A DNA stretch of 64,000 nt, from assembly GCA_011109175.1 (NCBI GenBank), contig RDEW01000008.1:629954-693953 (forward strand), in the 5' to 3' direction. How positions within the stretch are numbered: position 1 is the first letter of the stretch; each line of letters opens with the position of its first letter. Below the pieces are notes generated by a model. That model saw nothing but the letters and a program-made list of their open reading frames with translations. It did not search any database and was not told the origin of the DNA. This document shows, in pieces, positions 5,915 through 51,993 of this stretch. The position numbers were made by a program, and so were the translations under genes. This DNA is from Dicyema japonicum (taxonomy: Eukaryota; Animalia; Dicyemida).

Positions 5915-6029
5915 GGATTCTCGACCCCGCCGGACTCGTCCTCACCTTTGTCGGTCTGGGATCACTTAGTTAGATGAGAACTTTTATTTCTTTCTCTTTG
6001 ACCCAGTGATCCTGGGGGTAATAATAATA
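5915..6029 (+). mobile_element. 5'-truncated LINE 3' end with (TAA)n tail
   Basis: 15-bp TSD ATAAATACCCAGCCA at 5900-5914 and 6030-6044. Ends GGG ATC ACT TAG, then the 3' stem arm and tail. Confidence 0.85.
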
Positions 6030-6149
6030 ATAAATACCCAGCCATGTACATTATCGAGATAATAATACTGCACTTTACGAAGAGGCATATTAGTTGTAGC
6101 TCCTTAGGTAACAACAACGTTGAATTTTTGATCACGATTCTGGGCGTTT

Positions 6150-6350
6150 AAAGAAATGATTTCCAAATATTCAGTAAAGTGGTTAATGAGAATTTCCAAC
6201 ACCGGGAAGGTCATTTTGCTGAAAAAGAAGGAAGATCACTTTCGAAGCACTGGGTTGAAACTTTGTCTTTTAATAGGTGACATATCCACCTTGTAAGCAA
6301 GCTGCCTTTTGTCTTATCGCGTTTCGAAGTCATAGACGAAGGAATTAGTC
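6150..6350 (+). mobile_element. Possible degenerate hAT (ZMYM1/TTF zinc-finger-like) fragment
   Basis: Broken-frame peptides GRSLSKHW and KQAAFCL resemble the TTF-type zinc finger. Confidence 0.25.
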
Positions 6351-6506
6351 AACATCAAATTTTGGCTGGTAAATTCAACATCATATTTTTGGTATTTTTG
6401 AAAAAATTGTTGTTTTCTTTTCATCTTCAAACTCACGTTAAGAAGTACATAAGATGGAGAGAGTTCGAAAGACAAAGACTTATCAGAAGTCGATGAAATA
6501 AGAATA

Positions 6507-7050
6507 TGTCACATGGGCGGCGCGTAACGCATGGGCAGCCTGTTACATTTTTTCGACCTTGAAAAGGTCTTTTGATTATCCGACATTTAATTTTGTATAT
6601 CCGATTTATATCGTGATTTAATCTTGTTGAATTAGTTTTTTATTCATAAATGTTATGATTATAAAGATTTTATTTTTTATAGCGGTAAACCTAGATTTCT
6701 AGCGTGATTTATTGCATGGAAGATTATTTTGTTGCAATGGCTTCTTACAAAGGTTTTGTGAAAGATTGCGTTGAATATCAAACTTTAAAAGATGCTTTGA
6801 ATGATAAATTTCCCGAAAATCTTCCGAGGCACAGAAAATATAGGCTTGTAAAGAAGATAGAAAATTTTTCCATTATCAATGACAGGTATTGTAAATTTTC
6901 AATAATTTTAGACTGTATCTTAAATTAACTGATTCCAAGTTAGTCATATCCCTGGATAATAAAACCGAAATGTAGCATGTTGCAAAATCGTTGCACGAGT
7001 TTTCACACGGAGGAGTCAATAATCCAATTTTACCTTATCACACTCTTCAT
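6507..7050 (+). mobile_element. Ginger-like DDE transposon 5' fragment
   Basis: Begins TGTCAC like the element at 20124. ORF 6704-6928 is followed by an SHGG-type integrase zinc-binding remnant. Confidence 0.4.
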
Positions 7051-7249
7051 TTAGACGGTTAATCACATATGTAAGTTCTCTCGATTGTCTTTCAGATGCC
7101 CCCGGAATAGATTCCTAGCAAGACCTTTTTAGCTTCTCTTCCAGGTATTCTTTATCCACAATTGGCTTTTTCTGTGTCGCATTCATAACATCGTATTTTA
7201 GAAATCGATTTTTGATTATTGCGTCCTGCTTATTTTCACTAGACTTTGT

Positions 7250-8270
7250 ATCTAGGTAATGTGGCGGAGGAAGATTTTCTCCTCCATCTTCCTAACCCCT
7301 GACATTCGTTCCACTTCCTGTGGAGGCCACGGCTTCCCTGGCAACCGGACAACCACCATAACTCGTTCTGTGATCACCAGACCCGCAGTTGATACAGGAT
7401 CTTCTATTGTTCGGTTCTGGGCACTCCGGGGAACTATGTGGTCCTCCACTGAAGAAACATCTCTTTGCCCCATTGCAATGTCTTGCAATGTGTCCGAAAT
7501 ATTGACAATTAAAGCATCTTGTAGGTGGTCTTCTGGCCCACTCACAATCGATTTCCATCCATCCAATGACAAGGCCCAGGTGTATCAAGGACGTAGCTTC
7601 TCCCCTTGACTTTAAGCTCATCTTCACAACAGGGAGTTTTCTTCCATTCCTTACAATACGTTTCACCGACTCAGTGGTTGGAGCAATTTCTTTGTAAGCC
7701 ATAAGTTCGTCTTCCTCAATCCATATTGGCACATTCTTTAAAACAATTTCCGAAAGCCTCTCGAGTTCGATTACCTTGTGGTTTCCCTTCCCGAAAGGAG
7801 AAAATAGATTAGTCTCTTCAACGAATGAGATTTTATCTGACTCTTCTTTGAACTACAATCGGAAAATCCCAGTCACTCTGGCGGTTTTCAGTGATTTCAA
7901 TCCACATAACAGGTTTGCAAGTTTAATACTCCCCATGCTCTTGTCTATAGCCGAGAGTTTAACTGTCAACCAATGATCTGTCGAATCCACTCTGGACGCT
8001 GTTTTGGGTTTGTCTTTAACAGTTAACGGTTCCAGAAACAATCCTTAATGCTTTCAATACAACTCTTCTTTAAAACCTTTCCAGAGGTGGCTTTTCTGAT
8101 TTTAGTAATCCTCTTTGTAGGAGCTTTTTTAACGACAAGCATAACCACACAACAACCACGTAATTTATTCCCCTCTCATTATTCTCGAATTTTATACCTA
8201 CCCTCAATTCCCGGACACTTACACTCATAAAACGAAGGAACCAATTTCCAAAGAAACGCCATCGATCCAC
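7250..8270 (-). mobile_element. LINE ORF1 (gag-like, three CCHC knuckles)
   Basis: CFNCQYFGHIARHC, CFFSGGPHSSPEC and CINCGSGDHRTSYGGC in ORF 7292-7732. Typical Jockey/I/R1-type ORF1. Confidence 0.82.
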
Positions 8271-8528
8271 CTAACTCAAGAGAAGCCTTGTGTTTTGTTG
8301 CAATTATAGTAATTTTTTATTATAAAAGTAATTTTTCCACATTTTTTATTTAACCTTTTCAGATTTTCATTTTGGGGGAAACCGCAAAATTGGAGAATTT
8401 TTGCCCCATTTCGGTGTCTGATGTATTTTGTTTTTTTCGTAGTGAATTAACAAATCTGTATATATTAAAAACATTTTTATGAGTTTTATGTTTTACAAGA
8501 TTAAGAAGCATTGTGAAAGTCCGTACCA

Positions 8529-9640
8529 CAGGGGTGGCTAACCAGTCGATCTCGATCGATTGGTTTTTAACTAAACGATGCGATTAACATCGTTCCTGTG
8601 TTTATTTTCTCGCTTAATTTTCCATGATTTAACTGTCAGGGAAGAATTATTTTATTTAACGAAATATCTACAATTCTTTCAAAAAGTTTGTGTTATTGTC
8701 CGATTTATTTCCGTTAAAAACGAAAGTAATCAATTAATTAACACAAAAATTCAACAAACGTGGCCCCAGCCGACAATACCGACGTTGCCTCTCACGATTG
8801 CAACTGAGATCATATGGAAAAGCCACTGGGAATTACGTGCATCGTGATTTTTTTGTGTAGCTAGGCGTCCAAGCTTCTTTAGGAAACGAAACGATTTTCC
8901 ACTTATTCCTCCAGTTGTCTAAAAATAGTGGGGTAGAACGCGAATCGGTCGCGTAGCGTTTCGTATTTTTTCTCCTTTGCCTCATCGTTTTCCGCGGCAA
9001 ATTACCACAAAAGTGAATGAACTAAATTTGGAATTACAAGAAAACAATAAATATATTCTCGATATGATCGGATCAATAAATTCTTTCAAATTGAAGTTAA
9101 AATTGTGGATATCTCAAATCCAAAAGGAAAATTTTACAAAACTAGTTAATAAAAATCATGATGGCAAAGAATTTACTGTGGTACTACAAATAAAATAAAC
9201 GAGTTTTATCACAGATTTGTTAAAATTAATATAAATTAAAAAATTAATATATAATTAAAAATCACAGATTTGTCAACTTCAGGAAAATTACTCTTTTATG
9301 CACTTTCTTTGCTTTCTTCGTTTATGAACATTGACAATGTTTCAGAAGAATTTAGAAAGATTTTTGACGTTGATCCAAGAAAGATTCAAATAGAAATTAT
9401 ATGTCTAAAATGACATCATTTTAAAAGTACATTCAAATGTCAACATGTGGAAATTTAAGTTTCCAGAAAAATATCCCATTTTGATTGATGCGCATCAACG
9501 AATTCTTTTGTGCTTCGGAATCACGTATTTATCCGAAACATCATTTTCGAGAATGAAGATGATAAAATCTCAATATAGGACCCGTGTAACAAATAACCAC
9601 CTTGGGGACTGCATGCGAATAGCGGAATAATAACAAACCA
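8529..9640 (+). mobile_element. Degenerate hAT transposon (GTF2IRD2/EPM2AIP1-like transposase)
   Basis: Left TIR-like CAGGGGTGGCTAACC. Peptides FKLKLKLWISQI and FGITYLSETSFSRMKMIKSQYRTRVTNNHL (hAT C-terminal dimerisation region). Confidence 0.75.
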
Positions 9641-11014
9641 CTCAAATACGATGATGAGACGGTCATTCGTAGGTAGTTCTCCCCAACCTTGAGTCCTGGT
9701 GATTTGAGTCACTGTAGGTTATCACAGAGAGTCCAAGTTCTTCACCAATAAAAAACACAGACTTCCTTGGAGGACTAAGTAATGTTTCCATTAATTGAAT
9801 CCACGCTAGACAGAACTCAAACTTTATTTAAAGAATTAAGAACTGTAGCGTTAATTAATCAAAGGCATATGTCATTAAAAGTGTTTTTGACTTATCAAAA
9901 ATCGAAGCTTTTTGACCAACATTGCTCAATTATGAAAGAATAACTTGGTAATCTAATATATATTAAGATTAATTCTCAATGTGAGGGTGAGGTACCTTGG
10001 ACAACTGTGGCAATAGTTGTTCTCCAGTAAATACTGATGCTCGAACCTCGATGTGACCGAGATCGCAACCAGCATCCTTATTAAAGTCTGCATCAGTCGT
10101 ATCCTTACATTTTTTCGTCCTCTTCAAAAGACTCTAGAAGTTCTTCCAGAACCCCCTCCTCTTCCTGAGGGACCGATGAAAATGGACCATTCTCTCCCCC
10201 TACTCAGTTACATAGTTGCATGGGGTGGTTCCCCTTCTTTCTTAGTTTGCAGATTGTGCTCTACGAGGACTTAGAACACAACGTCGGTCCATGTACCTCC
10301 CTGCTCATCTTACATCTGAACATGAACGGAATCAGAAGCAAATTTCTAGGAATGCAGGATGAAAAAGTAGACAGTTAACCAAGTCAGTCCAAGTCTTTCT
10401 GACTATGTGGTACTCCGGAATGACTAGGACAGGAGTTCTGGTGCGGGTCTTCCAACGATTGTTAGAATCGGATTCACTGATGTTTGTCACCTTTCTGTGG
10501 GAGGGTGTCCGAACATTAGGGCATATCTCTGTTGAGTTCTAGCTCTCACATGCAGTACGGCCTACCCTCATGAATGTCCACAATATACCAAGTAGGTCGT
10601 GTCCTCCGTCATACAATCCCAACAAATTGAGGCTAAAAGACTCCTCAGCACATATGGTTTACCAAGTGACCATAACCTCATTTTATACGACTCAAAGTTG
10701 TGATACCATAAAACAATGAAATTATAATTTTTGTGAAAGGGAACTTTGCGGGCTTAACTAAGTATGTGGATTCTCAAATTTTTGGATGCAGATGACGAAT
10801 ATAAGCCCAGACTATGTTCACACACTTACTCTCATAAGGAAAAGGAATATTCTCAAATAGTTAAGTACGCATAATGCAGAGACTATTGACTGTATAAAAA
10901 AACTTAACATCTAAATTTCTTATCAATGTATTGATGAGTTACAAAAACCATCCAAAGTCATTAAGGATCAATATCACCATTACTAATTCCCAGTATTACT
11001 TTTTCACTCTAGAA

Positions 11015-15900: not shown

Positions 15901-18900
15901 CATAATAATAACACCAGAGACCGCGTTGCACAAACTAACTAATCACGTGATCCCTGAACACTCTAGCAAGGAACTCATCTTGGCCGATGCTCCACCCTCG
16001 ACTTTACACGAGCACGAATCGGTTGAGTGATGGGACTTTGCTGTCACGACGGTGCGTTCCATGGTTCATTCGCATCAAGGCTTCAAGTGGCAGTGGTGTC
16101 TGGAACTCTCCAGAAATCCAGCGTTCCGTGTTTTTGGAGGCTTTTGTCCGGCTAGTTTCGATCTTCAAGACACAGGCATACACAGACTGTGTAGGCACTC
16201 GACAAGGTAAGAATGATCAACTGAATCGTAAGCCTTCTTCACATCCACCCACATAGACAAAAGTGAGTTTCCGTGAGACACAGAAAGGCATTTGTTGATC
16301 AAAGCCTGCTCTTTTGCCCCCTGACAATTTCGCACAGTTCCCAACTGATTCTCGGAGAGAATCCCATTTGCGTCTACAAAGCTCCTGACCTCATTAGCCA
16401 CCAATTTGGTCAGCTTATACAGGGTTGGCATGCAGGTTATCGGTCGATAATCTGCAGCAGACTGGGGGTTGTCCAGCTTTGGGATCAAATAAGTTGTCCC
16501 TGTGCATGCCCAATCAGGAATCGTTTCCGGGTTAGTGATGCTTTTCTGTAATACACGACACATAGACTCGTGTAATGAAGTGCATCTTTTGATAAAGAAA
16601 TTATAAACTTTATCGACCCCGGTCGTCTTCCAATCAGGGAGATGTCTCACTACCGCCTCAAATTTCTTGCGAAAATCGAAAATTCCGCAAGATTCCGCCA
16701 AGAAAGGAGCGGCGCTGTACGGGACATTCCACGCATTTCCTCTGCGTGGTTTAGCCTCCCACATACTACCCCATGTGGAAAGCATTTCCGCGTCCTGCTG
16801 GGAACATACACTATGGCCATTTTCGTGTAGGCGACGGTAAAACAATCTGCGATTAAACTCAAACAGATTATTTTCTCTCCTTCTCTTACACCGACTTTCA
16901 TGTGTATAGAGTTTCCTCTTATACACCATTATTGCCCCCTCTAACTCCACCTTTGCCCTCCTCAACTCTTTGAGGTCCCATTTGGGAACACGGAGTTTAC
17001 TAATTAGCCCCTTTACTATAGCCGGTGCTTTTCCTCTAACCCCTCTCGCCACACTACTTATGTGCCCCTCCAGTGCTTCCAGCTCAGTCTGTCTCCAAGC
17101 AATCTTGGCACAGATCTGCTCCCTCCATTTACTGGGTGGTCTGGGCTTGTCCGTCAATTCCTCATAGGTGATCTGTGCTGCATACAGCACTAGGGAGATG
17201 TCACCCAATGACCCTACTGGCTTAGCCTCCACCGCATAAGCCACAGCCTTATTGATGCAGGTTAACACTCCACCGTTAACCTTACAATGAGGAATCTTGC
17301 GGGTAAATCTACGGTCCTCAAGTGGGACATCTGCCGCTGCAGCGAGATTCCGCGCAAAGACCTCATAAACATGCTTGAGCTGCAACGTATCACAGCTCTG
17401 GTGCTCGTGCTCTCTTTGACAGTTGTGGTCACCTGGTCCCCGCCCCTTTAGACCAGTACCCTCTTTGCCTACAGCCATCTTCTTGAGTTCACTCACAGAT
17501 ATAGCAGTACTGAATCTGCCACTGCAGAGCTCCGCCAAGTATGGCCATCCATTCCAGGGCATTCGAGATAGCCTGCTACGTACCTGCAGGACTACCTGCC
17601 TCGCCCATTCTTTTGGGTCATCTGCCACAACGCTCTCGGATATGGCAAGAATTACATTCATACCATCAGGTAACGCAAGTGACCCTTCTCCTTTTTTCCT
17701 TTCAACATTTTTGCCAACTCGAGAGAGTTTTAACGCCACCGAATCGAACGCACGTTGCATGTTATTTATTTAAATCGTTAAATAAAGTGGGGTGTTAGTG
17801 CTCAAAACAGAATGCTTTTCGATCGTTTATAAGCCTGTGACGCAATTCAGAACATTAGTTTTCTTTTCGCATTTCGTAATTACGTTTTCAACATGGGGTG
17901 AGAATTACATGTTCATGTCAAAAGTCACTCCAAGGATCCTTTTAGAATTTCTGAAAGAAATAGCTTCATTGTTTGCGTTTAGTTCGACCGTCTACCCAGT
18001 CTCTTGTCTAAAGTAAATAGGGTAGTGATGGACTTTTCACTGCTGGCAGTTAGGCGATTCTTCGATAGCCATTCGTCAAGACGGTCCAGGTTTTCTTGCA
18101 ATTTCGAAGTGGCAATTTGGATGTCTTGATCGCGTGATGCAATGACGATGTCGTCGGCATAAGTTAGAATAATAACATTTTCGGAGTATGGGGTTGGGAG
18201 GTCCGCCATGAAACTGGAGGCAAAAAGGATCCTTGGGGAACCCCACTAGGGACAAGCCGTGAAATAGACTTTGACTGGCCAATGCAGACACGTCCCCTCC
18301 GACCACTAAGAAAGTTAGCTAGACAGAGTTTGAGCTTTCAAGGGATCTTTGTTTAGTAAATTTTCCAAGTAAGAATTTTCCTTTACACAGAGTCGAAAGC
18401 TTTGTGGACGTCTATGGAGCAAAGTGTAGTCTTCATGTGTCCCGGCCTGTCCGAGAAACCATATAAAGTTAGCCAATGCAGAAAAGTGGGTCGAATTATA
18501 CCTCTCCTTTTTAAAACCATGTTGAAATGACAATCCGGGAAAAAATTTTTGATTTTTGCACGAACCAGCCTTCCAGAATTTTCGATATCGATCACAATTC
18601 CTTTTTCGATTTACTGAGATATATCGAGGGTATATTCGACTTCTTATGGTCTTTATGGAATATTTTCACATAATATTTTATTAGGTTATTTAAGTCCTTT
18701 TGGTTATAATCAACTTCGGATGATCTTTCATCCTTTCTTGAGGCCTCTTAAATGATCTTCCAGATTTCAGCAGTGGGTCAATTTCTATTCAATGAAGAGA
18801 GTACATGTTTCCATCTCGATTTTTGTGCTTTTACCTCACTGTTTTAATTCATTTTTCAAAACCTTCAGTCTAAGCTTATCCTCAGTGGTTAATCGGTTAG

Positions 18901-19957
18901 ACTTTTTGAGTTCGTTTCTTTCCTTCATTAATGCCGACCTGCCATGTCCCCTGGCGTAGTTAAGGTGGTGTTTAGGTACAGATAGTGATCTCACATCCAA
19001 GATGTTTACATAAGCGACTACTTTGTCTATGAAAGTAATGTCATCCAGATACTGCAGTAGTTATCAGTAAGCGTACGGTAAAATCTCCAGTTTGCGCGTT
19101 GTAGTTGAATTGTTCTAGGGATCTCCTCCTAGTTAACTTTTCTCTCTTGATCTTCAAAAGGATAGCATTGTGGTCGCTTCTTGAATTGTAATTGACTGAC
19201 CAGGTCGATATTGCCGCTAGTCCGGAGAGCAAAGCGTGATGTCTGGAAAAGTTAGTTGGTCTGACTCCCTGAAGGGGTTCTCGTATGTTTTGACGGATCA
19301 TTCATGACCGTTAATGGTCCTGTCTTCGATAGTAGTTCTTTTCCTCTTGAATCGGACGGTTGGCTTGCCAGCCATAGAGGGTGTTTGTCGTTGATATCCC
19401 CACCAATGATCATGTCGTTCAAAGAAGCGATAATTGGGCATAGTGTCGGGAAAAATGTTCACAAAGGTAATTTTTTCTATTTGTTGTTCCAAGTGAGACT
19501 GCATTGACTTTAGTAACATTGTCGTCTCCCAAGATATTCTTCGCCACTGAAGTCATGTCCACACATTTAAGGTCTTTCCGATATAAAATGAGAAGGCCAC
19601 TACCCAGCTTCTTCTTTCGGTCAGTCCGTATTGACTTGTATCCAGGAACATCGAGGTATGACTGTTTACAGTCAGTTTCGTCTCTTGAATCAAAGCCACG
19701 TCGATCTTCAGATCCGCCAGGGGAGAGCGCAGTTCCAATATTTTGCCACTTAGTCCGTTGACATTTATTTGTAGAACCGTGGTCCGTTTTTTGCAGTGGG
19801 CTGGGAGTTCCTTCCGGATAGATGAGACTGAAAGCGCGTGCTGCCGGGGACACAGTTTCTGCGGAGGTAAATGTTTAATGGTTCTTTTTGGATGAACATT
19901 AGGTGCCTTCTGTACGTTACCAATACTTACAGAATTAATAACCACATAACGCCACAC
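15901..19957 (-). mobile_element. APE-RT LINE 'family X', copy 1 (interrupted by an R4-like element)
   Basis: VLQINVNGL, QETKL, GGDIN, SDHNAI, IDVHKAFDSV, YADDI, then a 3' part ending LLECSGIT* and (TTA)n. Homologous to 42625-46320. Confidence 0.88.
16195..17790 (-). mobile_element. R4/Dong-like non-LTR retrotransposon, 5' half (531-aa ORF)
   Basis: DYRPITCMPTLYK, NQLGTVRNCQGAKEQALIN, WVDVKKAYDSVDH. RT is cut after domain 3. Confidence 0.85.
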
Positions 19958-19959
19958 TA

Positions 19960-20060
19960 AAATTATTTATTTAGAACCAAGAATCACCGAAACAAAGGAG
20001 AGTATGGGCCGTCAGGTGATCCCGGCCTCCTTGAGAAGCCGCTTAAACTAACTAATGAAG
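19960..20060 (-). mobile_element. LINE 3' end (LLKEAGIT*) with TAAA tail
   Basis: GGG ATC ACC TGA, then GGTGATTCTTGG and taaataaataa. Confidence 0.75.
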
Positions 20061-29335: not shown

Positions 29336-29339
29336 TTCT

Positions 29340-30330
29340 ACAAGACGAAGGAACATATTACTAGGTGGAGAAACATATTATGGGCCGAATGGACATATTC
29401 TACAAGAACGAAGGACTTTTTTGGGGGACGCAGTTGCCAAAGGGTCAAAATCTCCGGATATATTCCAAGTAGGACATAGTACCCACACCAATTGATCTCT
29501 ACATTCGTATCCGGGTCTACACGGCACTTTGTTAACCACATCATCGGTCCCTACAGGACGGCTTGGGACCACCGTGGAAGAACATACTGGGGAAAAGACC
29601 TACAAAGGGAGAACTAACTGGAGATGGGCGTACTGGCTTTGTACCTGCAACGTTCTGGAGATAAATTAGGATGCTTAACTAACTAGACAAGTAATTGGAT
29701 GGATATCAAAGAAAAGGGGTACCCGGATGAACTGTCCAGGCCAACCGGCGGACTGATGCCTATTCCATAACCTGTTGTTTAATTCATTTTCATTTCAAGT
29801 TTTCCATCATATCTAGGGCGGACAAATCCATAGAAAACTCTTTTGTACAAGAACCTGGAGGGAGAACATAGATGTTGGCGATAATAATAGCTCCTAGAGA
29901 GGTCTGTACCGAAATCCAATAACTTCTGTGTTTGCGTCTTGTATCAGATTCCTGAATATGGAGGAGTGTTTATCGAACATAATACCTCTCCTGACAAGGG
30001 TCAATAGTCCCCTACCTCGCCCGATTGTCGATCGACTCTCAATACATTGAAACGGATAAATTTAGGAGTAGTGGAATTACCAGAAAGCTTGGTCTCTTGT
30101 AAAAGGCAGATATCAATTTTGTTCCTTTCCAAATATAAACTCAGTTCGGATTCCTTGCCTCTAACTCCGTTAATGTTTAGGCTAAGTATCTTTAAAGACT
30201 TTGGTCCCGGATTCATTTTAACATCTCCTGACATGACGAGTCTTCACCGGAAAAGTGCACGGATATGTAGGAAGTGTCATCCAGGAGGAACTCCTTTAGA
30301 TGGTCGTTGACAAATGGTTCTTTTAGGATA
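29340..30330 (-). mobile_element. APE-type LINE 5' part with a 2A-like motif
   Basis: SGDVKMNPGP, ILSLNINGV, LQETKL, RVDR. Confidence 0.75.
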
Positions 30331-33175: not shown

Positions 33176-33284
33176 TGAGTGTTGCACATGCGAGGCTGTA
33201 AACATTATGACTTTCGTGAAAGTGCCTTAGTAGTTTTATCCACTAATTTAACACAAAATTCTTAGGAATTCCGTCGACGTAATA

Positions 33285-33365
33285 AATTTATTTAAAATCA
33301 TCGACAAATTAGAAGAGAATACAGTTTAGGTGATCCCTGCCTCCTTAAGCAGGCATCTTACCTTT
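33285..33365 (-). mobile_element. Degenerate LINE 3' end (LLKEAGIT*)
   Basis: ctgcttaaggaggcaGGGATCACCTAA, then a decayed 3' arm and taaataaa. Confidence 0.6.
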
Positions 33366-38229: not shown

Positions 38230-40850
38230 ATTAAACAACAACAAATCAGCTACCGAGAGACAGTGAGCATTGTCGCGAACGATGGCGAAGGAACTGAGAA
38301 AACCATCACGTTCACTGAGGTTTCTGAGTCACGTCTCGATTTCATTCCCAGTTTCATCTCCGAAATCTGAGTATTTCTTCAATTTCCTCTGCTCGTGAGT
38401 CGAAATTGTAGAAAATACATTGTGTAAAGCGGTAAATGGGTTGACCTTCATCATGTCCAAAGCCAGAGATCTTCCATGTGAAAATGGAAAAATTGTCATC
38501 CAATCTCTTCTTATTCCATGATCAAACCCACTAAGTTCCAACTCAGGAAGAAAACCAGCTGACACCAGTCCATTTTTGAAATTTCGTTGAGGGTGGTGTG
38601 TCTGGGATACCTCTCAACTCTCATTCGGCAGGAAAGAGGATGAATCCCTTCCTGTCAAACATAACCCAACAACGACACATGTGAAGTTCGTAAACATCGG
38701 ACCCGAAACCCAAGTCAATTCGGATAAGGAGACTTCCCTTGTGCAACAAGGTTCAGACGTTTGGGAGTGGTTAGGCGTTTAGCTAACATCTTTTGTCCTC
38801 TATGCAAGCTACCCGAAGACAAACGAAGTAGTACTGATTTAGGCCTATCTCCAGCTCCATGGGTGAAAACTTACAAGAAACATTATTCGCGGTTTCTGAT
38901 AGTTTATCCACTAGTCACTTCCACAGAGCTCTGATTTCGAAAAAAGACTCGTAAAACTGAGATTTCATAAAGTTACGTAAATCTTAGTCATAAGGAGTAA
39001 CTAGAATCACGACAAATATTCAAGAAATGCAACATTCGTCGTCGAGATAAGACTATCCATTGCAATCGGATGTTTCCGTTTTGAGGGTAAGGCAAGACGA
39101 AAGTTGTATAACACAGCGTCAGTGAAACACTGAACACTGAAAAAGAAATTTCAATTTATTTCAGTTAGATTTCAATTTGTTAGACCAGTCTGTCGTGATT
39201 ATCAGTTTGTCGTAAATAGTCCGAGAACCATAGGGAGAATAGTAGTAGATCAATGTTTATGAGCAGAATCGAACAGTGCCGATGAGTCAGACAAGGAAGG
39301 AGTGAATCGAGCCTGTTTAGTATCTAGATCAGGATTCTTCTCGTCTTCTGCATTTTTGAGATATATAATTGGTTCTCATCGGCAGGGAATATTTCTTTAC
39401 GGTGGTGGTAGGCTGGATATGATGGAAGAGGAAATTTACAGTGTCCGAAGATAGTCTCACAACGATAGCGCACAAACAGAAGCCTTTGTAACACAGTTGA
39501 GATGAAAAAAAACTTAAGCAGATTGTTCTCATGAGTAAAACAGCATGCATTTCTTCACCAGATGAGTAAAAATAGACGAATCGTATTGTCGTGAAAGCCA
39601 ATAGAGAATATGAAGGTCATCTATCTTTCACATAACACCATAGTTCGTAACTTGGACATCTTGATAACTTATTTTGTCGTGTATCGTGTGATGAAGGGAA
39701 AGCTCAATGTGGATTTTGATAGGTTTTAGAATCTTCCAGATTTGTTTTAACTATTGTGATGAAGGTATCTAATAATGTTCTACTTTCGTTTATTTTGTAA
39801 TCACATGTGCCGTGAAATGGAGATGTTAAATTGTCCTATAACTCTGGCCTTATTTATTTAACCCAAGACTACGGTAAAATCAAACTAATTATCACGTGAT
39901 CCCGATGCATTCTAACAGAGACCTCATCTTTTCCATATGTTCTTCTTTCGTACCCGCGCATGAACGTACAGGACGGCTGCCTGAATTTTCAAGGCCACCT
40001 TTCCGTGATTTGGAATCTAGTCTCATAAGGACATCCAGAGGCGTAGGTCCGATTCGGTGATCTTCACAAATCCAACGCTCCGTTACTCTACATGCCCTCT
40101 TTTGTATTTCCTCATATTTGTCCAAGATATGTACGGTCCCCACGAGGCGCATGCATATGAGAAACATGGCTCGATGTACTGTTTGTACACGTTCATCAAG
40201 ACTGGGTGAGTACCACTCTTCCATATTCCCGATAAACTTTTCAATACGTTCAGTTTCTTCTCGCCAGGTTAACAGTGTCGTATTTAGAGGCATTTCTCTT
40301 AATGATTGAATTGAGGTTCCCTTCTTTTAATCGGTCGGATGTGATTCGAGGACAAGAGGTGCAAGGAAGAGAAGGCGTATCCAGGCATCATCTTGAGTAT
40401 TGTCATCGACTGCCCTGTTGAAAGACAGGAGGCAGCTGTTAGAAGTGCCGATCTTGGGATTTTGAGTGGGATAATCATCTCCGACACAAGACGATTCAAA
40501 CGGCGTAGGCATTCATCCGTGTTAGATAGGTCCAGGGGAGGGCTCTCTCCTTCTGCCGATGTTCCCAAGGCATGAGGGGCATGACCAATTTGGCAGAGAT
40601 TGTGCGGTCCTTCTCGTTAGCATATGTCACCCAAAATGTCTAAAATTGGGGCAACGGGAATATTGAATGCCGAATTTCTTCTCGTTTGCTTTGCCACAGA
40701 TTAAACAGGGAAGAGACGTTCTGGAAACACGGTTAATTACGTCCGCTTTCAGTTATCTGTCGTTCGTTATGGCATTGAGGTGTTTGCAGATCTCATCTTC
40801 ATCTTGTTTCTGATTTTCCTTTTCTCTTAGACCACAACGACCACAAGGAG
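38230..40850 (-). mobile_element. Fragmented CRE-like retrotransposon with nested insertions
   Basis: The 5' UTR and N-terminus (40250-40850) are homologous to 58650-59195. The RLE 3' part (IFPFSHGRSLALD) lies at 38280-38800. Confidence 0.65.
39850..40230 (-). mobile_element. 5'-truncated LINE 3' end (LLECIGIT*)
   Basis: ORF end TERWICEDHRIGPTPLDVLMRL...GIT* is homologous to the family X 3' end, followed by a TAAA tail. Confidence 0.75.
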
Positions 40851-41042: not shown

Positions 41043-42162
41043 TTATGATTTAATAAAGGCAACACCTTTATCGATGTTCTTCATTAATTCAGCAATACCA
41101 GTTTCCAAACGAGTATTCTCAGAAGATGATAACTTGCCTATTCCCTTCACCTCCTCAATCCCCTCTGGCTATAATCATTATAACAATGACATACTCCAAA
41201 CAGAACAGGGGATGCAAAATAAGGAGCTTCAGTAACAGATGACTTGACGTAAGCACATTGAACATTACGTTCTCCAGCAAATCCTCGAAGAACATTATCA
41301 ACAAACTGGGCACCAGCATAAGCCATGGACAGAGTAGCCGATCCCTTTAAATAACACAAAATTGATACTCCTCCAGCCTTAGCATTAACTACTGCAGTCC
41401 CTGCCTCCTGAATTGACGTAACCAGTTCATTCTCTTGTTCCTAACAAATAAAACAGCAATAAACTTCAGTAAGGTTAGGTCTGGGGGTGGCCTGGGAAAG
41501 AAGGGGGATTATAGTATTGCCAGAATGTCCACATACACAATCACAGTGAACTGTCCTGGGGTCCCTATTCTACAAAATAACTCCATAGAATACCATAAGT
41601 CGTCCAATAAAAGTTTGTGCCCTCACAACATCAAGAGCAGTGACTCCACAAATTCTGGTGTCCCCCACCAATCCGTACTTTTTGAATACTTCAAATGCAA
41701 TGGGGACAGTTGAATTTACTGGGTTTGTTATTATCGCTATAAATGTGTTAGGACATGTTTCAGCACACGTGGTCACAATATCTCTGACTATAGAAGCATT
41801 CATTTTGAAGAGATCATCTCTAGTCATTCCAGGTTTTCTTGGGACTCCAGCAGGGATGACCACCAAATCACAGTCTGATAGACATTCTTTAAGTCTGTCT
41901 TGTCCAGTAAATCCAGACACAACAGATTGAGTGCTTATGTGAGATAAATCCATGGCAACTCCATCAACATTGACACGATCATATAATCTGAGAGACTTTA
42001 TTTGTTCGTTTGTTTTAAGTAGCAAAGACATTGGCTGTCCTATTCCCCCAGCACCCCCAACAACAGCTACATTGTATAATCTCTACAAATAATGTCCAAT
42101 ATAACATTAAATCCCTTATTAAATGTATTAATTGCCCGAATAACACCATTACTTAATACCAT
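41043..42162 (-). CDS. MDH2: Mitochondrial malate dehydrogenase
   Basis: Presequence, [68 protein letters not shown]. Introns of about 23-29 nt. Confidence 0.95.
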
Positions 42163-42624: not shown

Positions 42625-45600
42625 ATAATAATAATAACACCAGAGACCACGGTTACACAAACTAACAAATCATGTGATCCCAGCACGCTCTAGCAGGGAA
42701 CTCATCTTGGCCCGATGCTCCCCCCTCGACCCTATACAAGCACGTATCGGTCGAGTGACTGGACCTTCGCAGTCACGACGGCGTGTTCCATGGTTCATTC
42801 GTATCAAGGCTTAAAGAAGCATTGGTGGCTGGAACTCTCCAGAAATCCAGCGTTCCGTGATTTTGGAGGCCTTTATCCGGCTAGCCTCTATCTTCAAGAC
42901 ATTCGTCCAAGAGATGAATGAGCCTCATATACTACATGCATAAGAGATTCATGGTTCAATGAATTGTTTATATGCAGTGTTTAAAACAGAATGCTTTTCG
43001 ATCTTCCATAAGCCTGTGAGGCATTTCAGAACATTAGTTTTTTTTTCGCATTTCGTAATTACGTTTTCAACATGAGGAAATAATTTTAATTTAATTATTT
43101 TAATAACCCCGGGAACACCGAGAAAGAAAGACGAAAGAGTCAAACAGTTAGGTGATCCCAGTCCCCGCAATCAATTGTGCCATTTGACGTCTGTGATCTT
43201 CCATTGTCCCCACTACTTTCCGGAAGAGTCTTCTCTCGATCTTGCAGAGGAATCCGGTCCGGGAGGAATTTCCTATCCAATCGGTTTTCTCTTGCCATGG
43301 AAATGATCAGGCGAAGCGGGTTTCCATCTTCCTCACAGACGCGAAGAAATCCGGAACCACGACTACGGGTCTTAGCTTCCATGAGTAGTGGGTCGACTGT
43401 TGATCCATTACGTGGGCAAAGCATACTGATTGTTTTCTGGTGTATTGAGTTGACTCTGTGGACCATAGTCTCGGATAGCGCTAATCTCCATGCAACGGAG
43501 GCATACTCAACGGCTGGCGCGATTGTTTGTTGGTAGAGGGCAGAAAAAGAAAAGTCCATATTCCTCGAACTCCTCCGGACAAGGGCGCGTAAAACGTTAA
43601 TGTTCTGGAGGCCCCTGGTAATCATGTCTTTTGCGTGGGAGTTAAAATTGAGTAGACTGTCGTATTTCGTCTTCTGCATCGTCGAAGACCTCTCAATTTT
43701 AGAAGGATTGGATTGTGGTCACTGGAGAAGCCGTAAAAGACGTTCCAAGAAATGAGTCCAGCAGGGAAGGTGAGTATAGTGTTAAGTCGCGGGATGTGCA
43801 GCTATCAGTAATCCTTAATGGAGTCCTCGTATGTGTGTTAGGGTTGTTCAGTATAATCAGGTCAGGAAGATAATTTGCACTTAGTTCTCCTCAGTTATCA
43901 GAGGATTGGGAAGTGAGCCAAACTGGATGTCGTGCATTAAGATCCCCGCATAACAGTAGATTTTTCAATGTTGAAATGCGTGATAAATCAGGGGTGTAAG
44001 ATGGCGGACACGATCCTTGTGGAGGAATATATTAATTAGCCAAATGGATCCAAAAAACGAGAATAACTCGATTTTGACAGTAATCTGCTCCGAAGTCTTG
44101 TCGGTGCCAAGAAGCTCTGAGGTTCGTTGAGTTGTATCTATAAGGGAATATCGTTCTTTATAATAATAAGTAGTCCACCTCCGCGTCCTCCCTGACGATT
44201 TTTACGGATCACTGTGTATCCGGGAAAATAGGGTGTTGGTATAGAGGGAGATAGCTTGGACTCCTGTATTAAAGCGAGATCAGTATTAAAGGAGTACCCG
44301 GAGTTCAAAGATTTTCCTTCTGATCCCATTCGTATTCAGTTGTATAATTGTCAAATCTTTCCATGGCCCAGGATTGGTTTCGACGTCTCCACATAAAAGA
44401 ATCAGAAGTCTGGACAAATGGCGACACCAGATAGGGTCGAAGACACACGAGTTGAGGGGACCACCGGACGGTGGGGAGAAGCTGTTGGCTCTTTTCGTTC
44501 CTTTTTGGAATGGGTGACACCATTTCTGGTTAGCCACATGACACCACGTTAACAACATAGTTCCGAAAGTCAGATGGGTGAGAATGACATATGCATGTCA
44601 AAAGTTACCCCAAAGATCCTTTCAAATCCGGGAGAAAATTTTTGATTTTTGCAAGAATTTTTTTCGATGCCGAACACAATAACGTGACCGGTCTGTATGA
44701 AGCTGGCTCCTTCTTCACTTCACCGGGTTTCAAAATTGGACGTAGGTGGGCAAGCTTCCATAAGGCTGGAATATAATTTTTGTTAATGGAGTGGTTGAAT
44801 ATCCTTGGTAATGCAGCGATTCCATAGTCTCCCAGATTCTTTAGGAGGATCATTGGGATCTTATCCGGTCCGTTAAAGTAGGTTGTTTTAATGAGTCAAT
44901 GCATATCTTACGTCGTTTTCAGTGAAGTGAATCGTATCCGGTTCCTTTTTCGGTTTACTAAGATATTTAGGGGATACATCCGACTTCTTATGGTCTTTAT
45001 GGGATATTTTCACATAATATTTTATTAGGTTATTTAAGTCCTTTTGGCTGTAATCTACCTCGGATGATCTTTCATCATATCTTGAGGCCTCTCAAATGGT
45101 CTTCCAGATTTTAAGCAGTGGGTCTATTTCTATTCAATATAGAGAGCACATGTTTCCATCTCGATTTGTGTGCTTTTACCTCACTGTTTTTAGTTCATTT
45201 TTCAATGCCTTCAGTCTAAGCTTATTTTCAGTGGTTAATCGGGTAGACTTTTTGAGTTCGTTTCTTTCCTTCATTAATGTCGACCTGCCATGTCCCCTGG
45301 CGTAGTTAAGGTGATGTTTAGGTACAGATAGTGATCTCGCATCCAAGAAAATGCTGTTTACATAAGCGACTACTTTATCTATGGAAGTATCCAGATACTG
45401 CAGTAGTTGTCAGTAAGCGTACGGTAAAGTCTTCAGTCTGCGCGTTTGTAGTTAAATTGTTCTGGGGATCTTCTCCTAGTTAACTTTTCTCTCTTGATCT
45501 TCAAAAAGATAGCATTGTGGTCGCTTCTTGAAATGTAATTGACTGACAAGGTCGATATTGCCGCCAGTTCTGGAGACCAAAGCGTGATGTCTGGAAAAGT

Positions 45601-46320
45601 TAGTTGGTCTGACTCCCTGAAGGGGATTCTCGTATATTTTGACGGGTCATTCAAAGGTCCCGTCTGCGAAAGTAGTACTTTTCCTCTTGAATCAGATGTT
45701 TGACTTGCAAGCCATAGAGGGTGTTTTGCGTTGATATCCCCACCAATGATCATGTCGTTCAAGGAAGCGAAAATTGGGCATAGTGTATTGCTTCGGGCAA
45801 GAACCAGGTGGGAGGACATAGATGTTCACAAAGGTAATTTTTCCATTTGTGTTCCAAGTTAGACTTGACTTTAGTAGCATCTTCGTCTCCCAAGATATTC
45901 TTTGCTATTGAAGTCATGTCCACACATTTAAGGTCCTTCCGATATAAAATGAGTAGGCCACCACCCAACTTTTTCTTCCAGTCAGTCCGTATTGACTCGT
46001 ATCCAGGGAGCATTAGGGTGTGACTGTTTATAGGGAGTTTCGTTTCTTGAATCAAAGCCACGTAGATCTTCAGCTCCGCCAGGAGAGAGCGAAGTTCCAA
46101 TATTTTGCCCCTTACTCCATTAAAGTTTAGTTGTAGAACCGTGGTCAGTTTCTTGCGATGGGCTAGGGGTTCCTTCCGGATAGATAAAACTGAAAGCGCG
46201 TGTTACCGGGGAGACAGTTTCCGAGGAGGTACGTGTTTAATGGTTCTCCTTGAATAGACATTAGGTGCCCTCTGGGCGTTACCAATACTTACAGAATCGG
46301 TGAACTACATAACGCCACGC
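42625..46320 (-). mobile_element. APE-RT LINE 'family X', copy 2 (interrupted by a 2A-bearing LINE; RT core deleted)
   Basis: Collinear homology with 15901-19957 and the same 5' boundary. Ends LLERAGIT* and (TTA)n. Confidence 0.88.
43085..44560 (-). mobile_element. Internally deleted APE-type LINE with a canonical 2A peptide
   Basis: LLILLCGDVETNPGP, IIQLNTNGI, QESKL, GGGLLI, then EYASVAW...GIT*. Confidence 0.85.
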
Positions 46321-46639
46321 TAAATTTATAATAACTTAGTGGAATATATCAATCACCTAAAACCTTTAATAAAATGTACAAAAAATTGGAAAATGATACA
46401 AATTTATTCAATAATTAATTTAACCCTAACCTTAATAAAAAATTTATATTTTTCAAAAAATAAACTGCTATTTTGCTATTTTTTGGTATCACTATTTTTA
46501 TTTAAATTAAGTAAAATGTTATTATCCTAGATTAACACAGAAAACTCATTTTTATGTAAAAAATATTCATAATAGAACCTTTTAACCGAAAATTCAATTC
46601 TTTTATCATACGCGGATGATCTCGTGATTGCACCGAAAA

Positions 46640-46975: not shown

Positions 46976-46989
46976 GCCTGTACTGCATG

Positions 46990-47312
46990 GGCCGGGTGGC
47001 ATAGTGGTTAGGTGTCGGGCTTAAGTAGCTTAGGCTACGGGTTCGAATCTCGCTGCTGTTCACCTGGTGGAAGGTTCCACGCATCTACGATGCAGAAAGG
47101 GTTTGACGAGTGACGCCGTCATCAGTGAATACTCACTGCGGAACTGGATTGTCTAGAAAGGACACTCACACAAGAAAAAGAAAAAAGAAGTGAAGATCAT
47201 TCCTTGGTTCTACGATTAGTTAAAATTAACTGTTCTTTACTTAAATAAAGTGTGTGTCCTGCCTATGCGGAGCTATAAATACTATGGCTCTCGTGAAAAG
47301 GCTTTATTATTA
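46990..47312 (+). mobile_element. tRNA-derived SINE, copy 2 (best preserved)
   Basis: A box TGGCATAGTGG, B box GGTTCGAATC, (TTA)n tail, 11-bp TSD TGTACTGCATG at 46979-46989 and 47313-47323. Confidence 0.92.
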
Positions 47313-47329
47313 TGTACTGCATGAATTGC

Positions 47330-47670
47330 TCTCCTATCATTATCAGCACAGAGTAAACTGGAAATATTACAAAACCGATGTCTTAGAATATTATTGAGAT
47401 CTTCAGGACACTAAACGTCTCCCAATCATAAAATACCTTACGAAACGCCACCGGGACTTCCTTAAGAAGGCAAAGTCTCCTGACTATCCCCTCAAGCCGG
47501 ACATCAAACTATATTTTGACGCCTGCCCGAGATAAAAGAAGAAACCTTCCCTGACTTCAAAACTAATCACAGGAGAAAGCCTGATGTTGACACTGGGATC
47601 ACTTAGCATGGATGATAACTTTTGTCCTTTTGTGATTCCGGGGTTAATAAAATAAATTAAATTAAGGCCT
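47330..47670 (+). mobile_element. LINE 3' end (DTGIT*)
   Basis: GGG ATC ACT TAG, then GTGATTCCGGGG and an A-rich tail. Confidence 0.7.
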
Positions 47671-47759
47671 TAATTTAATTTTTATTCATTTGATAATAAA
47701 ATTTCTTTTTGATAAAAAATAAAAAAATAAAATAAAATAAAATATAAAACCATTTTATG

Positions 47760-48520
47760 AAAACCCTACAAGGAGACCCAATATGTCCCATATTACAATT
47801 TATAAAGGAACTGAGACCTCAAAAGAGAATAGATGCTGTAACTTATGCGACGGATGTGGACCTTGTCTCGAAAAAAAGGAAAGCCCTCACCCAATTAATA
47901 GAGGTAATACCGTAAAGACTGTCTGCATCCCCAGAGCTTCAGATGTGGATTTTGTTGGTGGATATGAATGTTTGGTTGTTAGAGTCAGATTCACAGGAAA
48001 TTAATTTGGCTTAGTCGTGACCACAGATGTGTTCTGGTGAATTCACTTCTTAACAATAACATCTTCATTAGCTGTAATAAAAAATAAATGGTGATTAATA
48101 AATAAAATTATTCCAAAGACCAAGGGTAAAACCTAACTAACTCCATCCTGATGCGTTCCAGCAATTCCAGAACTTGTCTCCAGGTAACGAAATTGTCTCC
48201 CAGTGGAAAGAATAGTCCATGATCCCCTGAAACAAATAAAATAATATTTCAAAAACTTGCAAATTGTGCACTCTTGGACAATTCTTTAATAATTTTTCGT
48301 TTTAGTAAAAAATAGGAGTGCAAACATTCTTGCTGCAGTTTAAAAATTCCCAAATGGCTATTTTTATGGATATCCGCAATAGTTCGCATTTCAGACTCGT
48401 TATCCATGTAAATGACTAGTCTTTGGAGGTATAATCGACCATCAACGGCAATTAATGTTTCGGATTTTTTCATTAATTTTTATTTCGTCTGTCTTTAAGA
48501 TTTTTATAATATTTTTGACA
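47760..48520 (-). mobile_element. Degenerate Ginger-like integrase fragment
   Basis: DIHKNSHLG...C zinc-binding remnant in ORF 48249-48473. Confidence 0.35.
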
Positions 48521-48539
48521 AAACCTATTATCATATAAA

Positions 48540-50500
48540 GAGATAGACAATTCCATTTAGTTTAGTTCAAGCGTCGGATCCCATTAATTTTCTTCTCCAC
48601 AATGTATTTTACTGAAGCGAGAATCCTGTCCTTTTCTACACTCATGACATCACGCAGCTTTTTCCCCAAGGCTAACTTTACTGCTGACCTTCTCGACTTT
48701 TCCAGAAGTAACATTATTCTTTCCCTTAACAGGATAATCCTTATGAAGATAAACATGAATGTCTCCAAGCTAACGGAAAACTTGCATGTACAGAGAAGCA
48801 ACGCCTTCTTCCTTCTTCGTCTGAAATCTTCCATGAAAGAACCTTCCCGATCGATAACTATCCCGAGGTAGCGGAGTGAATGTACTCTCGGATGCCAAAG
48901 AATAAGGCTGTGCATGATGTCTCCGTAGGCGACTAGCCCTCAAGATGCTGGACTTCTAGGTAGAGAGTCTCATCCCTCTCTTTGAGCACCAATCCTGTAC
49001 TTGATCAGTGAACAACTTGATTCTTCTTTCTGATAATGTTGACTTCCCAGACGTATCCATAATCACTATATCGTCTGCGTATATTAACAATTGGTGTTTG
49101 CATCCGGCGGAATAGGGAAGTCTGACAAAAACACATTGAACAAAAGCGGGCTCAAAACAGAGTCCTGTGGAGCGCCCCTCTTCAATAGGATATCTATTTA
49201 CATATTTCCCTCCAACACGTACTCGGGAAGTCCGTTTTGTTAGGAAATCCTTTATCCATGTGAAGAGATTCTTTTGGATGTCAGCAGCCGCTAGCCTTGA
49301 TAGGAGGGCTTCATGCCACACGCTATCGAAAGCCTTGGACAGGTCCAAACACACCAGGTTGACTTGCCTCTTGAATTCCAGACCTCTCAGTACCATCGAA
49401 TGCATGTGGTGGATACAATCCGTGCAGGATTTCCCAGGTCTGAAGCCACATTGTTCCGCGAGGAGGAAACAGCTCTCTTCCATGTGCTCGTTTAGTCTCT
49501 TGAAGATAATTCTCTCAGCAATCTTGGAGATAGAGCAAATCAGGCTTGATCGGCCCTATAGTTAAGGGGGTCAATCCCTGACTTTCCTGGTTTAAGTATC
49601 ATCCTGACAATAAAGGTTTTCCAGCGTCTTGGGACATATCCATTATCAATGCTTGCGTTAAATAAGTTCTTTAGCACGAGCAACAAATCCTCTGGACCTT
49701 CCTTGAACATTCTCATGCTAATATTGTCATGTCCAGGAGCGTTAGCCTTGCATGCTCTAATGGCAACCACGAAGTCCTCTGTCGTTATCCTCATATTGGT
49801 ATCTTTGAGATCATCCGGAGAATAGGTAAGAAGTTCTTGTAACGCTTCCAACTCTTCCCTTGGGATCAGCTCCATTGGGTTGACTCCTGGATACAGTCTA
49901 GTTGCTTCTTAAAGATATCTGAGACTTCTTCCGCTGAACATGACCCACCTTCTGGCTTGTTCAAAGAGATTTTCATCTTTCTAGTTATTCTTTTGTAAAT
50001 CTTCCAGAACAAGGGGTCTTTGGTGTTTAGTGTGCTTGCCTCGACCTTCCAACATCGTTCTAGAGTCAGTCTTGTTCTCTCTTCAATGGCATTTTGATTA
50101 TCTTTAGTTGATCGGTCAATGTAATCCAGTCCATCCAGTCGACACATCTTCTGACTTTGGTCTTCAGTCGGTTTCTCTCTTCAATCAGAGTTAACGTGAA
50201 AAAAAGGAAATCAATGTTCTTCTTGCGCTCAGCACCGGACAGTCTCCGCTTGGCGTAAGTTGACAAGTATCGCTTCATAACAATTGAGAGGTCTCTGTCC
50301 ATGATATCAATATCACTTCGGGAATAAGGTCCCTCCTTCCAGTTTTTGAGGTTTCTAGAGATGTATCTTCTGTAGTGTTCCCAATTTATCGTTGAGAGGT
50401 CATATCCTGTGAACACTGACTCCGTAGTGTCCGGAGCCAGGTTCAGTGTCATCTCATGCGGGATGTGGTCGCTCCTGATGTCCCACATGGTTTTCTGGCC
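48540..50500 (-). mobile_element. Jockey-like LINE ORF2 (end of the endonuclease through RT)
   Basis: SDHIP, APGHDNI, QCGFRPGKS, LDLSKAFDSVWH, IYADDI, RYLGIVID. Confidence 0.9.
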
Positions 50501-50509
50501 TATAAATCG

Positions 50510-50950
50510 ATAAGGATGAAAAGAAAAAACTTACTTTACTGTAGAAGACGGAGTTAGAATATTCAAAAATTGTATTTTAGCAACGATTTACGCAGAATAA
50601 AGAAGTATCTAGTTAGTTAAAGCACATACCAGTAAACACTGTTTATGGTTTCGCTTGTCCCATGTTTTTAGATTATCCTTTCCGGTAGTCTTCTTCATCC
50701 TTTTCGCTTTCGTGCTCGTCTCATGATTTCGTAAAGATCTGGAATCTATATTTTCTGTTAATAAGTTTTTTCTATTACAAAAATGGAAAAACAACATACT
50801 TCTCGATGCATATACGACTATTTGAAAAAATTTCCTTCCACATCATTATCTATTCAGTAAAGAGTTTTATTATTGTAAAATTATTATCTAAATTCCCAAA
50901 TTTTTAACTGAAAACGTTTTGAGTTACATTATTCTTTTCTCGCGAAAAAA
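50510..50950 (+). mobile_element. hAT (CGGBP1-like family) 3' fragment
   Basis: Nucleotide homology to 55850-56030 (-) and 59905-60090 (+). Confidence 0.55.
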
Positions 50951-51304
50951 ATAAAATTGTTGTCTATTTAAGGTTCCTCATTTAAATAATTGTAAGAAGG
51001 GACAGTATGCTTTTTGATCATAAGTGATGCACAAATAAATAGAAGATACCTAATTTCTTTAATTGAAGTGTTGCACCCCCAAAAAAAACATGTCACAGGC
51101 ACACGTGGAAGCATAATTTTTTTTCGCATTTTTATAACATTTTTCCTGACTCTATTTGTTTTATTCAAATACAGTAAACCCTCATCCGAACTAAAAAATT
51201 TGGATGCCATTCGGATTGTGAAGGGAATAAATATATTAATTTCATTGTAGTTAATGTTTATGTTTTCATATATAATAATAATCTCTCCATTTTATTCAAT
51301 AAGT

Positions 51305-51993
51305 CTGCATCCAAGTCTCAGTTCACGCTATTTACTACGGACAGAAGATTTAAAGGTGGATTTGAGATATTCTTCGGAAACATTCCCATCCCTTATACAC
51401 GAATCCAGAAGATCCTTGGAGTAACTTTCGACTTTCCGATGACGTTTGCCAGTCACACGGAGGAGGCGTTAACCGAGGGTCTTCGAAAATAGAACGTCCT
51501 AAAAGCCATCGTAAAGAAGAGCCCCTTCCATCCTACTGCTTGTATCAGCAAAGTATATCTTCAAGTTATTACGCCGACGATTGAATATGCCTGTTCTGCC
51601 TGGAGATTCGCCATTCCATCTACGAGGGTGGAGCGTGTGAATTCTCTCAGACGGAAGATCATGAGGCACATACAATTAGACTCCACATCTGTCCCCAGTC
51701 TGCTTTCAGAGGAGGCGACGGTGAGAAATGGCCAGGGTTTCCTACGTTTTTGCAAGGAACTGGGAAACCCGTTCAAAAAAAGGTGGCCCATGCAGAGGAA
51801 TTTCGGTCGGTTATAAAAATTGCACGCCGATGGAATTCTTATGCAGAAGGAAAAGAAGGCGTTTCCGGAATGCGGTTGAGTCATCAGAAGACGAGACAAA
51901 GAAAGTTCGGATGTTGTTGGAGGCTGGGATCACCTAATTAGTTAGTTTTGACCTATCTTTCTTGGTGGTCTTGGAGTTAAATAAATAAATAAA
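51305..51993 (+). mobile_element. 5'-truncated LINE (LLEAGIT*)
   Basis: 11-bp TSD ATTCAATAAGT at 51294-51304 and 51994-52004. KILGVTFD, EYACSAW, (TAAA)n tail. Confidence 0.88.

Follow-up and report, generated by a model that had tools for sequence, protein, structure and literature searches.

Why should long interspersed nuclear elements (LINEs) that have otherwise drifted apart close their open reading frame (ORF) on the same three codons? The question is raised by a 64,000-nucleotide stretch of Dicyema japonicum DNA (GenBank assembly GCA_011109175.1, contig RDEW01000008.1, positions 629,954 to 693,953; hereafter the window), in which LINE ends carry Gly-Ile-Thr and a stop codon shortly ahead of a simple-repeat tail. 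A first-pass annotation of the window had proposed that these codons form one arm of a covarying RNA stem. The analysis reported here leads us to regard the module as probably a 3′-terminal RNA hairpin of one group of compact, single-ORF LINEs of the apurinic/apyrimidinic endonuclease (APE) type, serving recognition and priming by reverse transcriptase (RT). A hairpin next to a repeat tail is the accepted recognition signal of stringent-type LINEs and, to our knowledge, nearly all work on such hairpins concerns vertebrate and insect elements, and all of it concerns hairpins in untranslated regions.

Nine LINE ends carry a Gly-Ile-Thr-stop module

The sequence GGGATCAC occurs 11 times in the window against an expected 1.21, a number that none of 100 shuffles reached. 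Nine of the 11 sites encode Gly-Ile-Thr-stop in frame with an upstream LINE C-terminal peptide, the first G of each lying at 5958 (+), 15954 (-), 20023 (-), 33337 (-), 39903 (-), 42681 (-), 43159 (-), 47595 (+) and 51926 (+). The two remaining sites, at 4173 (+) and 61621 (+), are unrelated, the latter falling inside a ketoacyl-synthase exon. The C-terminal peptide common to the ends reads approximately FLCR..R..FR..VGS.EDH..KMRSLLE.AGIT (alignment A3). A covariance model, R1, built from a MAFFT alignment of the nine window ends (A2), matched exactly these nine ends upon scanning of the window and no other site. The nine LINE ends reported by the first-pass annotation all continue a LINE reading frame, and the arm coordinates it gave are all correct to within 1 nt. 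The 8-nt tag (GGGATCAC plus stop) marks the 3′ ends of one LINE group and should aid repeat annotation in octopus genomes. The nine copies, designated by the position of the first G, are as follows.

5956-6029 (+), e5958: 5′ arm 5956-5966 (CTGGGATCACT), stop TAG, 3′ arm 6005-6015, (TAA)n tail to 6029; 5′-truncated element 5915-6029 with a 15-bp target-site duplication (5900-5914 / 6030-6044)
15902-15956 (-), e15954, family F1: 5′ arm 15946-15956, stop TGA, 3′ arm 15915-15925, (TTA)n tail to ~15902; the 3′ end of LINE body D (see below)
19960-20025 (-), e20023: 5′ arm 20015-20025, stop TGA, 3′ arm 19977-19988, (AAAT)n tail; a very short copy of ~100 nt adjoining the 5′ end of LINE body D
33283-33339 (-), e33337, decayed: GGGATCACC TAA core intact, 3′ arm 33292-33302
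39850-39905 (-), e39903, family F2: 5′ arm 39895-39905, stop TGA, 3′ arm 39863-39873, (AAAT)n tail; preceded by ~75 in-frame C-terminal codons
42624-42683 (-), e42681, family F1: 5′ arm 42673-42683, stop TGA, 3′ arm 42641-42651, (TTA)n tail; the element reaches up to ~43085
43090-43161 (-), e43159, family F4: 5′ arm 43151-43161, stop TAA, 3′ arm 43109-43119, A/T-rich tail; the 3′ end of element B (see below)
47593-47665 (+), e47595, family F5: 5′ arm 47593-47603, stop TAG, 3′ arm 47631-47641, followed by the tail
51924-51993 (+), e51926, family F3: 5′ arm 51924-51934, stop TAA, 3′ arm 51964-51974, (AAAT)n tail to 51993; element 51305-51993 with an 11-bp target-site duplication (51294-51304 / 51994-52004)

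Four copies are only ~100-130 nt long. Other loci were examined on contigs totalling ~180 kb, among which the module was found on Octopus sinensis contigs in two good copies (L001 and L006) and one decayed copy (L002). The stretches L001:20626-20693 and L006:16130-16197, both picked up by R1, are relatives of e51926.

A helix overlapping the last codons of the ORF

The helix is 10-11 bp long, and its 5′ arm consists of the last 3.7 codons of the ORF, that is, bases 2 and 3 of the codon preceding Gly followed by GGG AUC ACN. The codon before Gly has the form NCN (Ala, Ser or Thr) and its C enters pair 1; pairs 3-10 are formed by GGG AUC AC, and pair 11 by the wobble base of the Thr codon. In every copy the stop codon comes immediately after the 5′ arm and is thus the first triplet of the loop, as had been predicted. 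The complementary 3′ arm of 11 nt lies 21-38 nt downstream of the stop, this being the length of the loop, and the (TAA)n, (TTA)n or (AAAT)n repeats begin 1-3 nt past it in eight of the nine copies; the earlier placement of this arm about 20-40 nt downstream, just before the tail, is hence accurate. The proposal that protein code and RNA structure overlap also agrees with the sequence.

In families F1 and F3, and partly in F2, the loop opens with a conserved UNR-UUAGUUAGUUU (for instance at 15931-15945 (-), 51935-51950 (+) and L001:20650-20663), even though these families are only ~40% identical upstream. Counting the stop of the ORF itself, this loop start brings stop codons into all three frames.

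A stem of 10-11 bp can form in eight of the nine copies. The ninth, e33337, is the decayed copy that had been noted near 33330: its core is intact, its 3′ arm is eroded by the loss of three pairs, and no stem is predicted for it. In single-sequence folding, seven of the nine copies have the stem in their minimum free energy structure (z-scores from -5.1 to +0.2, e47595 having the strongest fold at z = -5.1). Helix base-pair probabilities are 0.7-1.0 in e5958 and, when computed in a 221-nt context, at least 0.5 in seven of 11 copies. Both arms were aligned by MAFFT unaided, and the RNAalifold consensus of the alignment is exactly this 11-bp helix. Standard pairs fill 89-90% of the cells (with 9 and with 12 copies), compared to 31-52% when the 3′ partner is slid by one to three columns.

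Of the two strands, the sense strand gives the more stable fold in 10 of 11 copies which, together with the many G.U pairs, points to a helix that acts as RNA rather than DNA. A structure acting at the level of the DNA or of the antisense strand was rejected, in that the G.U pairs would turn into C.A mismatches. The UnaL2 LINE 3′ element is included among Rfam families; a scan of the whole window matched no Rfam family at E <= 1, HDV-like (hepatitis delta virus-like) ribozymes included.

Codon fixation and the pattern of change

No variation was seen at any of the eight core positions of the 5′ arm (GGGAUCAC). All 11 copies counted as non-decayed (nine from the window and two from O. sinensis) use GGG and ATC, and the earlier claim that the Gly and Ile codons are fixed is thereby substantiated: among the LINE coding pieces of the window, 28% of Gly codons are GGG and 37% of Ile codons are ATC. 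Just upstream of the core, codons for Leu, Ala and Glu vary freely. Per column, the 8-nt core underwent 0 changes, the ten columns before it 3.1 and the loop 2.3. Over the 102 nt upstream, identity is 51-57% between F1 and F2, 55-57% between F3 and F4 and 30-45% in other comparisons. One RNA helix is common to about six diverged LINE families.

Because the core of the 5′ arm is invariant, most pairs change on one side only, with two-sided changes at only 2-3 pairs. In shuffle tests of covariation, the observed score was reached by 71 of 500 shuffles with nine copies and by 150 of 500 with 12 copies, neither result being significant, and the covariation term of RNAalifold is only -0.17 kcal/mol. 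The RNAalifold check that had been recommended thus returns the helix itself as consensus with next to no covariation, and "covarying" is too strong a word for the stem.

The clearest two-sided case is the pair formed by the third base of the Thr codon, for which covariation had been claimed. In the window, this pair is U-A in one copy (e5958), G-C in two (e15954, with one alignment gap moved, and e39903) and C-G in four (e20023, e33337, e43159 and e51926), the last form also being that of both good O. sinensis copies. It is broken in e42681, where an A.C mismatch looks like CpG decay of ACG, and in e47595 (U.U). The three Watson-Crick types fall in three lineages distinct also in their stop codon and loop and, since each type maps to one lineage, they represent about two events. 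The claim therefore holds as regards the three forms, and is weakened by the two mismatches and the small number of independent events. A further pair of variants, CAGGG/CTCTG versus CTGGG/CCTGG, had been read as compensatory; pair 2 is unpaired in three of nine window copies and in six of 12 overall, making this an unreliable case.

A more telling pattern emerged from a parsimony count of changes in ten copies, using a tree assumed from the family groupings. The four 3′-arm sites opposite G or U underwent 10 changes, nine of which are C/U or A/G transitions that keep pairing, whereas the four sites opposite A or C underwent two, both pair-breaking and each confined to one dead copy (10 versus 2; binomial p = 0.019). 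What is seen is aptly worded as conserved pairing with wobble-compatible drift, plus one pair that exists in three Watson-Crick forms.

Compact APE-type LINEs upstream of the module

Three LINE bodies in the window lead into module-bearing ends.

17797-19966 (-), LINE body D, family F1: leader, PF14529 endonuclease, RVT_1 with YADD box, thumb region
44598-46329 (-), LINE body A, F1-like: PF14529 endonuclease and start of the RT, with a 5′ end as in D
43090-44597 (-), element B: open leader, 2A motif, endonuclease and C-terminal region, ending in e43159

Across bodies A and D, PF14529 was matched at 4e-11 and 2e-6 and RVT_1 at 3e-8, the YADD box of the RT lying in D. Body D resumes at 16172-15902, beyond a 1.6-kb Dong-like fragment, and terminates in e15954, an F1 end; beyond the insertion of B, body A has e42681, also an F1 end, on its downstream side. 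Bodies D and A start at the same nucleotide (19966 and 46329, respectively, on the minus strand), which suggests that full-length copies have a fixed 5′ end and that the LINE is very compact, at ~2.5-3 kb. F1 would accordingly be a compact, single-ORF LINE of roughly this size.

Two other accounts of e15954 were discarded. The 531-amino acid ORF at 16165-17760 (-) is not its body and belongs to a Dong/R4-like LINE with a restriction-like endonuclease; nor is e15954 a short interspersed nuclear element (SINE) or simply a truncated copy. The Dong/R4-like fragment itself (16173-17796 (-), 1.6 kb) comprises an N-terminal region and half of an RT, and has relatives with CCHC and restriction-like endonuclease motifs. 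It sits inside element D, where it replaces 74 nt of D, and is without its own 3′ half, an outcome not expected of a simple insertion.

In element B, the endonuclease is joined straight to the post-RT C-terminal region and the whole RT is missing, making B a deletion derivative that still ends in Gly-Ile-Thr-stop. Directly before the start of its endonuclease, B harbors a 2A motif, GDVETNPGP, at ~44375 (-); the motif is absent or decayed in the F1 bodies A and D. A second 2A/StopGo motif, GDVKMNPGP, was noted at 30213 (-), also immediately upstream of a LINE endonuclease start. A 2A directly upstream of the endonuclease in single-ORF LINEs has been described for mollusc elements of the CR1 and Ingi clades (Odon et al. 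2013, PMC3708506), and the layout seen here would fit such 2A-bearing CR1/L2/Ingi-type LINEs of molluscs.

The elements show the hallmarks of APE-type LINEs, a class of retrotransposons without long terminal repeats (LTRs): an endonuclease followed by an RT on the same strand, an end carrying a tail, and target-site duplications, which are clean in two copies (15 and 11 bp). Short or 5′-truncated copies and such duplications are what target-primed reverse transcription from the tail usually leaves behind.

Several of the short copies adjoin the ends of other elements. The tail of e20023 meets the 5′ end of D (19960-19970), that of B meets e42681 (43085-43095), and the copy L006c (L006:16030-16050) comes directly after the (TTGTC)n tail of another LINE. 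This arrangement suggests insertion into A/T-rich or microsatellite tails.

Distribution of the module

The best protein matches of the window are to O. sinensis. The module is missing from the LINEs on four non-octopus contigs, from the Dong/R4-like element at 17796-16173 and from the LINE with a (TTGTC)n tail on L006. The label "clade-wide" thus applies to one LINE group, found in the window and in O. sinensis, and does not extend to these other LINEs. A further LINE, on the ENA contig L004 (7191-12167), combines PHD, endonuclease, RT and RNase H domains in an I/Nimb/Ingi-like layout and has no Gly-Ile-Thr module.

A search of protein representatives returned no match to a 190-amino acid piece of element B, and the C-terminal alignment A3 retrieved no homologous proteins; a 199-amino acid RT piece gave two weak matches. 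No relative of the L001 peptide was found among metagenome contigs, and neither metagenome nor viral contigs contained the pattern GGGATCACNTRATTAGTTAG. Finally, R1 matched no SINE-like copy carrying this tail, either in the window or in the ~180 kb of other loci.

Proposed function and alternative explanations

By analogy with stringent-type LINEs (PMC4176376, PMC8665684, PMC3747384), the most likely role of the hairpin would be in RT recognition and the start of target-primed reverse transcription. The element's own RT would bind the hairpin on the sense RNA and reverse transcription would start within the adjacent repeat tail, much as in eel and zebrafish L2 and at the hairpin-plus-microsatellite of CR1. 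The 5′ arm would be frozen because it must also encode Gly-Ile-Thr, leaving only the non-coding 3′ arm to drift, by C/U and A/G changes after which a G.U or Watson-Crick pair still forms.

A number of observations weigh against this reading. The sample consists of ~12 copies from ~6 lineages, all of them dead copies, and the shuffle tests of covariation were not significant. In their sequence context, e42681 and e43159 favor alternative folds, and the helix probability of the copy L001c is only ~0.2. A change from ATC to ATT was never seen, though both the protein and a U.G pair would survive it; since pairing and coding alone do not fully account for the frozen core, a sequence-specific reading of the core, a link with termination or another role may be needed in addition. 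The window lacks a partner SINE, and PMC5135761 remarks that experimental support for 3′ stem-loops is lacking in invertebrate elements.

The hairpin may also be real and selected for a different step, such as forming or protecting the 3′ end of a transcript that is poorly polyadenylated, exporting the RNA from the nucleus or localising it, or coupling translation termination to ribonucleoprotein assembly. Conservation of the helix alone does not tell which protein reads it, the (AAAT)n tails contain AAUAAA and so would place 3′ processing right beside the stem, and the stop codon is found at the edge of the helix in every copy. We nonetheless consider a different step rather unlikely, as a hairpin set directly against the repeat tail and kept in ~100-nt copies is what is expected of a priming signal, and RT recognition is the role of all hairpin-plus-repeat LINE tails that have been studied by experiment (PMC4176376, PMC1636434). 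It is harder still to believe that the module has no structural function, Gly-Ile-Thr being kept for the protein and the downstream block being an inherited motif whose complementarity is historical. The freezing of synonymous positions in GGG and ATC amid freely varying neighbors, the concentration of 3′-arm changes where transitions keep pairing, the three Watson-Crick forms taken by the Thr wobble base and its partner in three lineages, and the strand asymmetry due to G.U pairs all count against this, although the view does accommodate the one-sided changes that an invariant 5′ arm imposes on most pairs, the shuffle tests, and the lack of pairing at pair 2 in half of the copies.

Equally improbable in our judgment is that families have repeatedly swapped the 3′ module, through template switching or recombination, and that the core is identical for this reason rather than through long purifying selection. 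LINE and SINE tails are well known to be swapped (PMC3747384), the 8-nt core is 100% identical while identity upstream drops to 35-57%, and F1 and F3 have the loop start UUAGUUAGUUU in common. Against this, the C-terminal peptide motif fades gradually upstream with no sharp breakpoint, the loops, tails and 3′ arms differ among families, and an exchanged module would still have to be functional. There is, lastly, a slim chance that the overlap is itself functional and that loading coupled to termination equips the element with an inherent cis-preference. The helix would have to be melted by the ribosome as it translates the final codons and would refold only at termination, beside the protein just released, such that the RT would be loaded onto the RNA encoding it. 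Under this scheme the 5′ arm would be frozen even at synonymous sites compatible with pairing (ATC to ATT) and, were it true, the module would bear on the origin of cis-preference.

Neighboring features in the window

The window also contains the following features.

41570-42031 (-): host exon, lactate/malate dehydrogenase NAD-binding domain (7e-36)
48100-48480 (-): piece resembling the integrase zinc finger of an LTR element (H..HLG..K motif)
48565-50530 (-): another APE-type LINE body (RVT_1 at 2e-17), cut off at ~48560 and succeeded by the zinc finger-like piece at 48100-48480
60965-61867 (+): host exons, beta-ketoacyl synthase N- and C-terminal domains

Comparison with known LINE tails

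A close likeness is seen in the L2 tails of eel (UnaL2) and zebrafish (ZfL2-1 and ZfL2-2), where short tandem repeats come after a stem-loop at the very 3′ end (PMC4176376, PMC1636434, PMC3747384). These stem-loops are bound by the ORF2 protein of the element itself, and retrotransposition depends on the tail (PMC4176376, PMC1636434). The stringent-type L2 tails are described in the 3′ untranslated region, whereas the present elements have a coding 5′ arm and carry the stop codon in the loop; the repeats also differ, being TGTAA in L2 tails and (TAA)n or (AAAT)n in this group.

In amniote CR1 (Suh 2015, as cited in PMC8665684), a hairpin lies directly upstream of a microsatellite, the two being taken as the RT recognition site, and copies are heavily 5′-truncated, as they are here; hairpin and microsatellite are in fact used to define 3′-anchored CR1 copies. 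The CR1 microsatellite is the 8-bp ATTCTRTG and the elements are larger and have two ORFs, unlike the single ORF, the ~2.5-3 kb and the 2A of one copy in the present group. The 2A-bearing LINEs of PMC3708506 resemble element B in harboring GDVExNPGP immediately upstream of the endonuclease and in having no ORF1; that paper deals with the N-terminus and, in the passages searched, is silent on the 3′ end.

Plant L1 and RTE tails are similarly reported to end in a short conserved hairpin next to simple repeats, with compensatory changes (PMC3747384, PMC6007223). Those elements are from another clade and another kingdom and, unlike the present group, have a documented partner SINE.

Relative to these systems, the module adds a very compact, mollusc-type example, and its dual-coded arm amounts to a natural experiment in which the coding arm is frozen and all evolutionary play is in the 3′ arm. 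We regard it as a real and well-defined example of the known hairpin-plus-repeat start signal of LINEs, and hence as a modest extension of that signal rather than a new kind of element.

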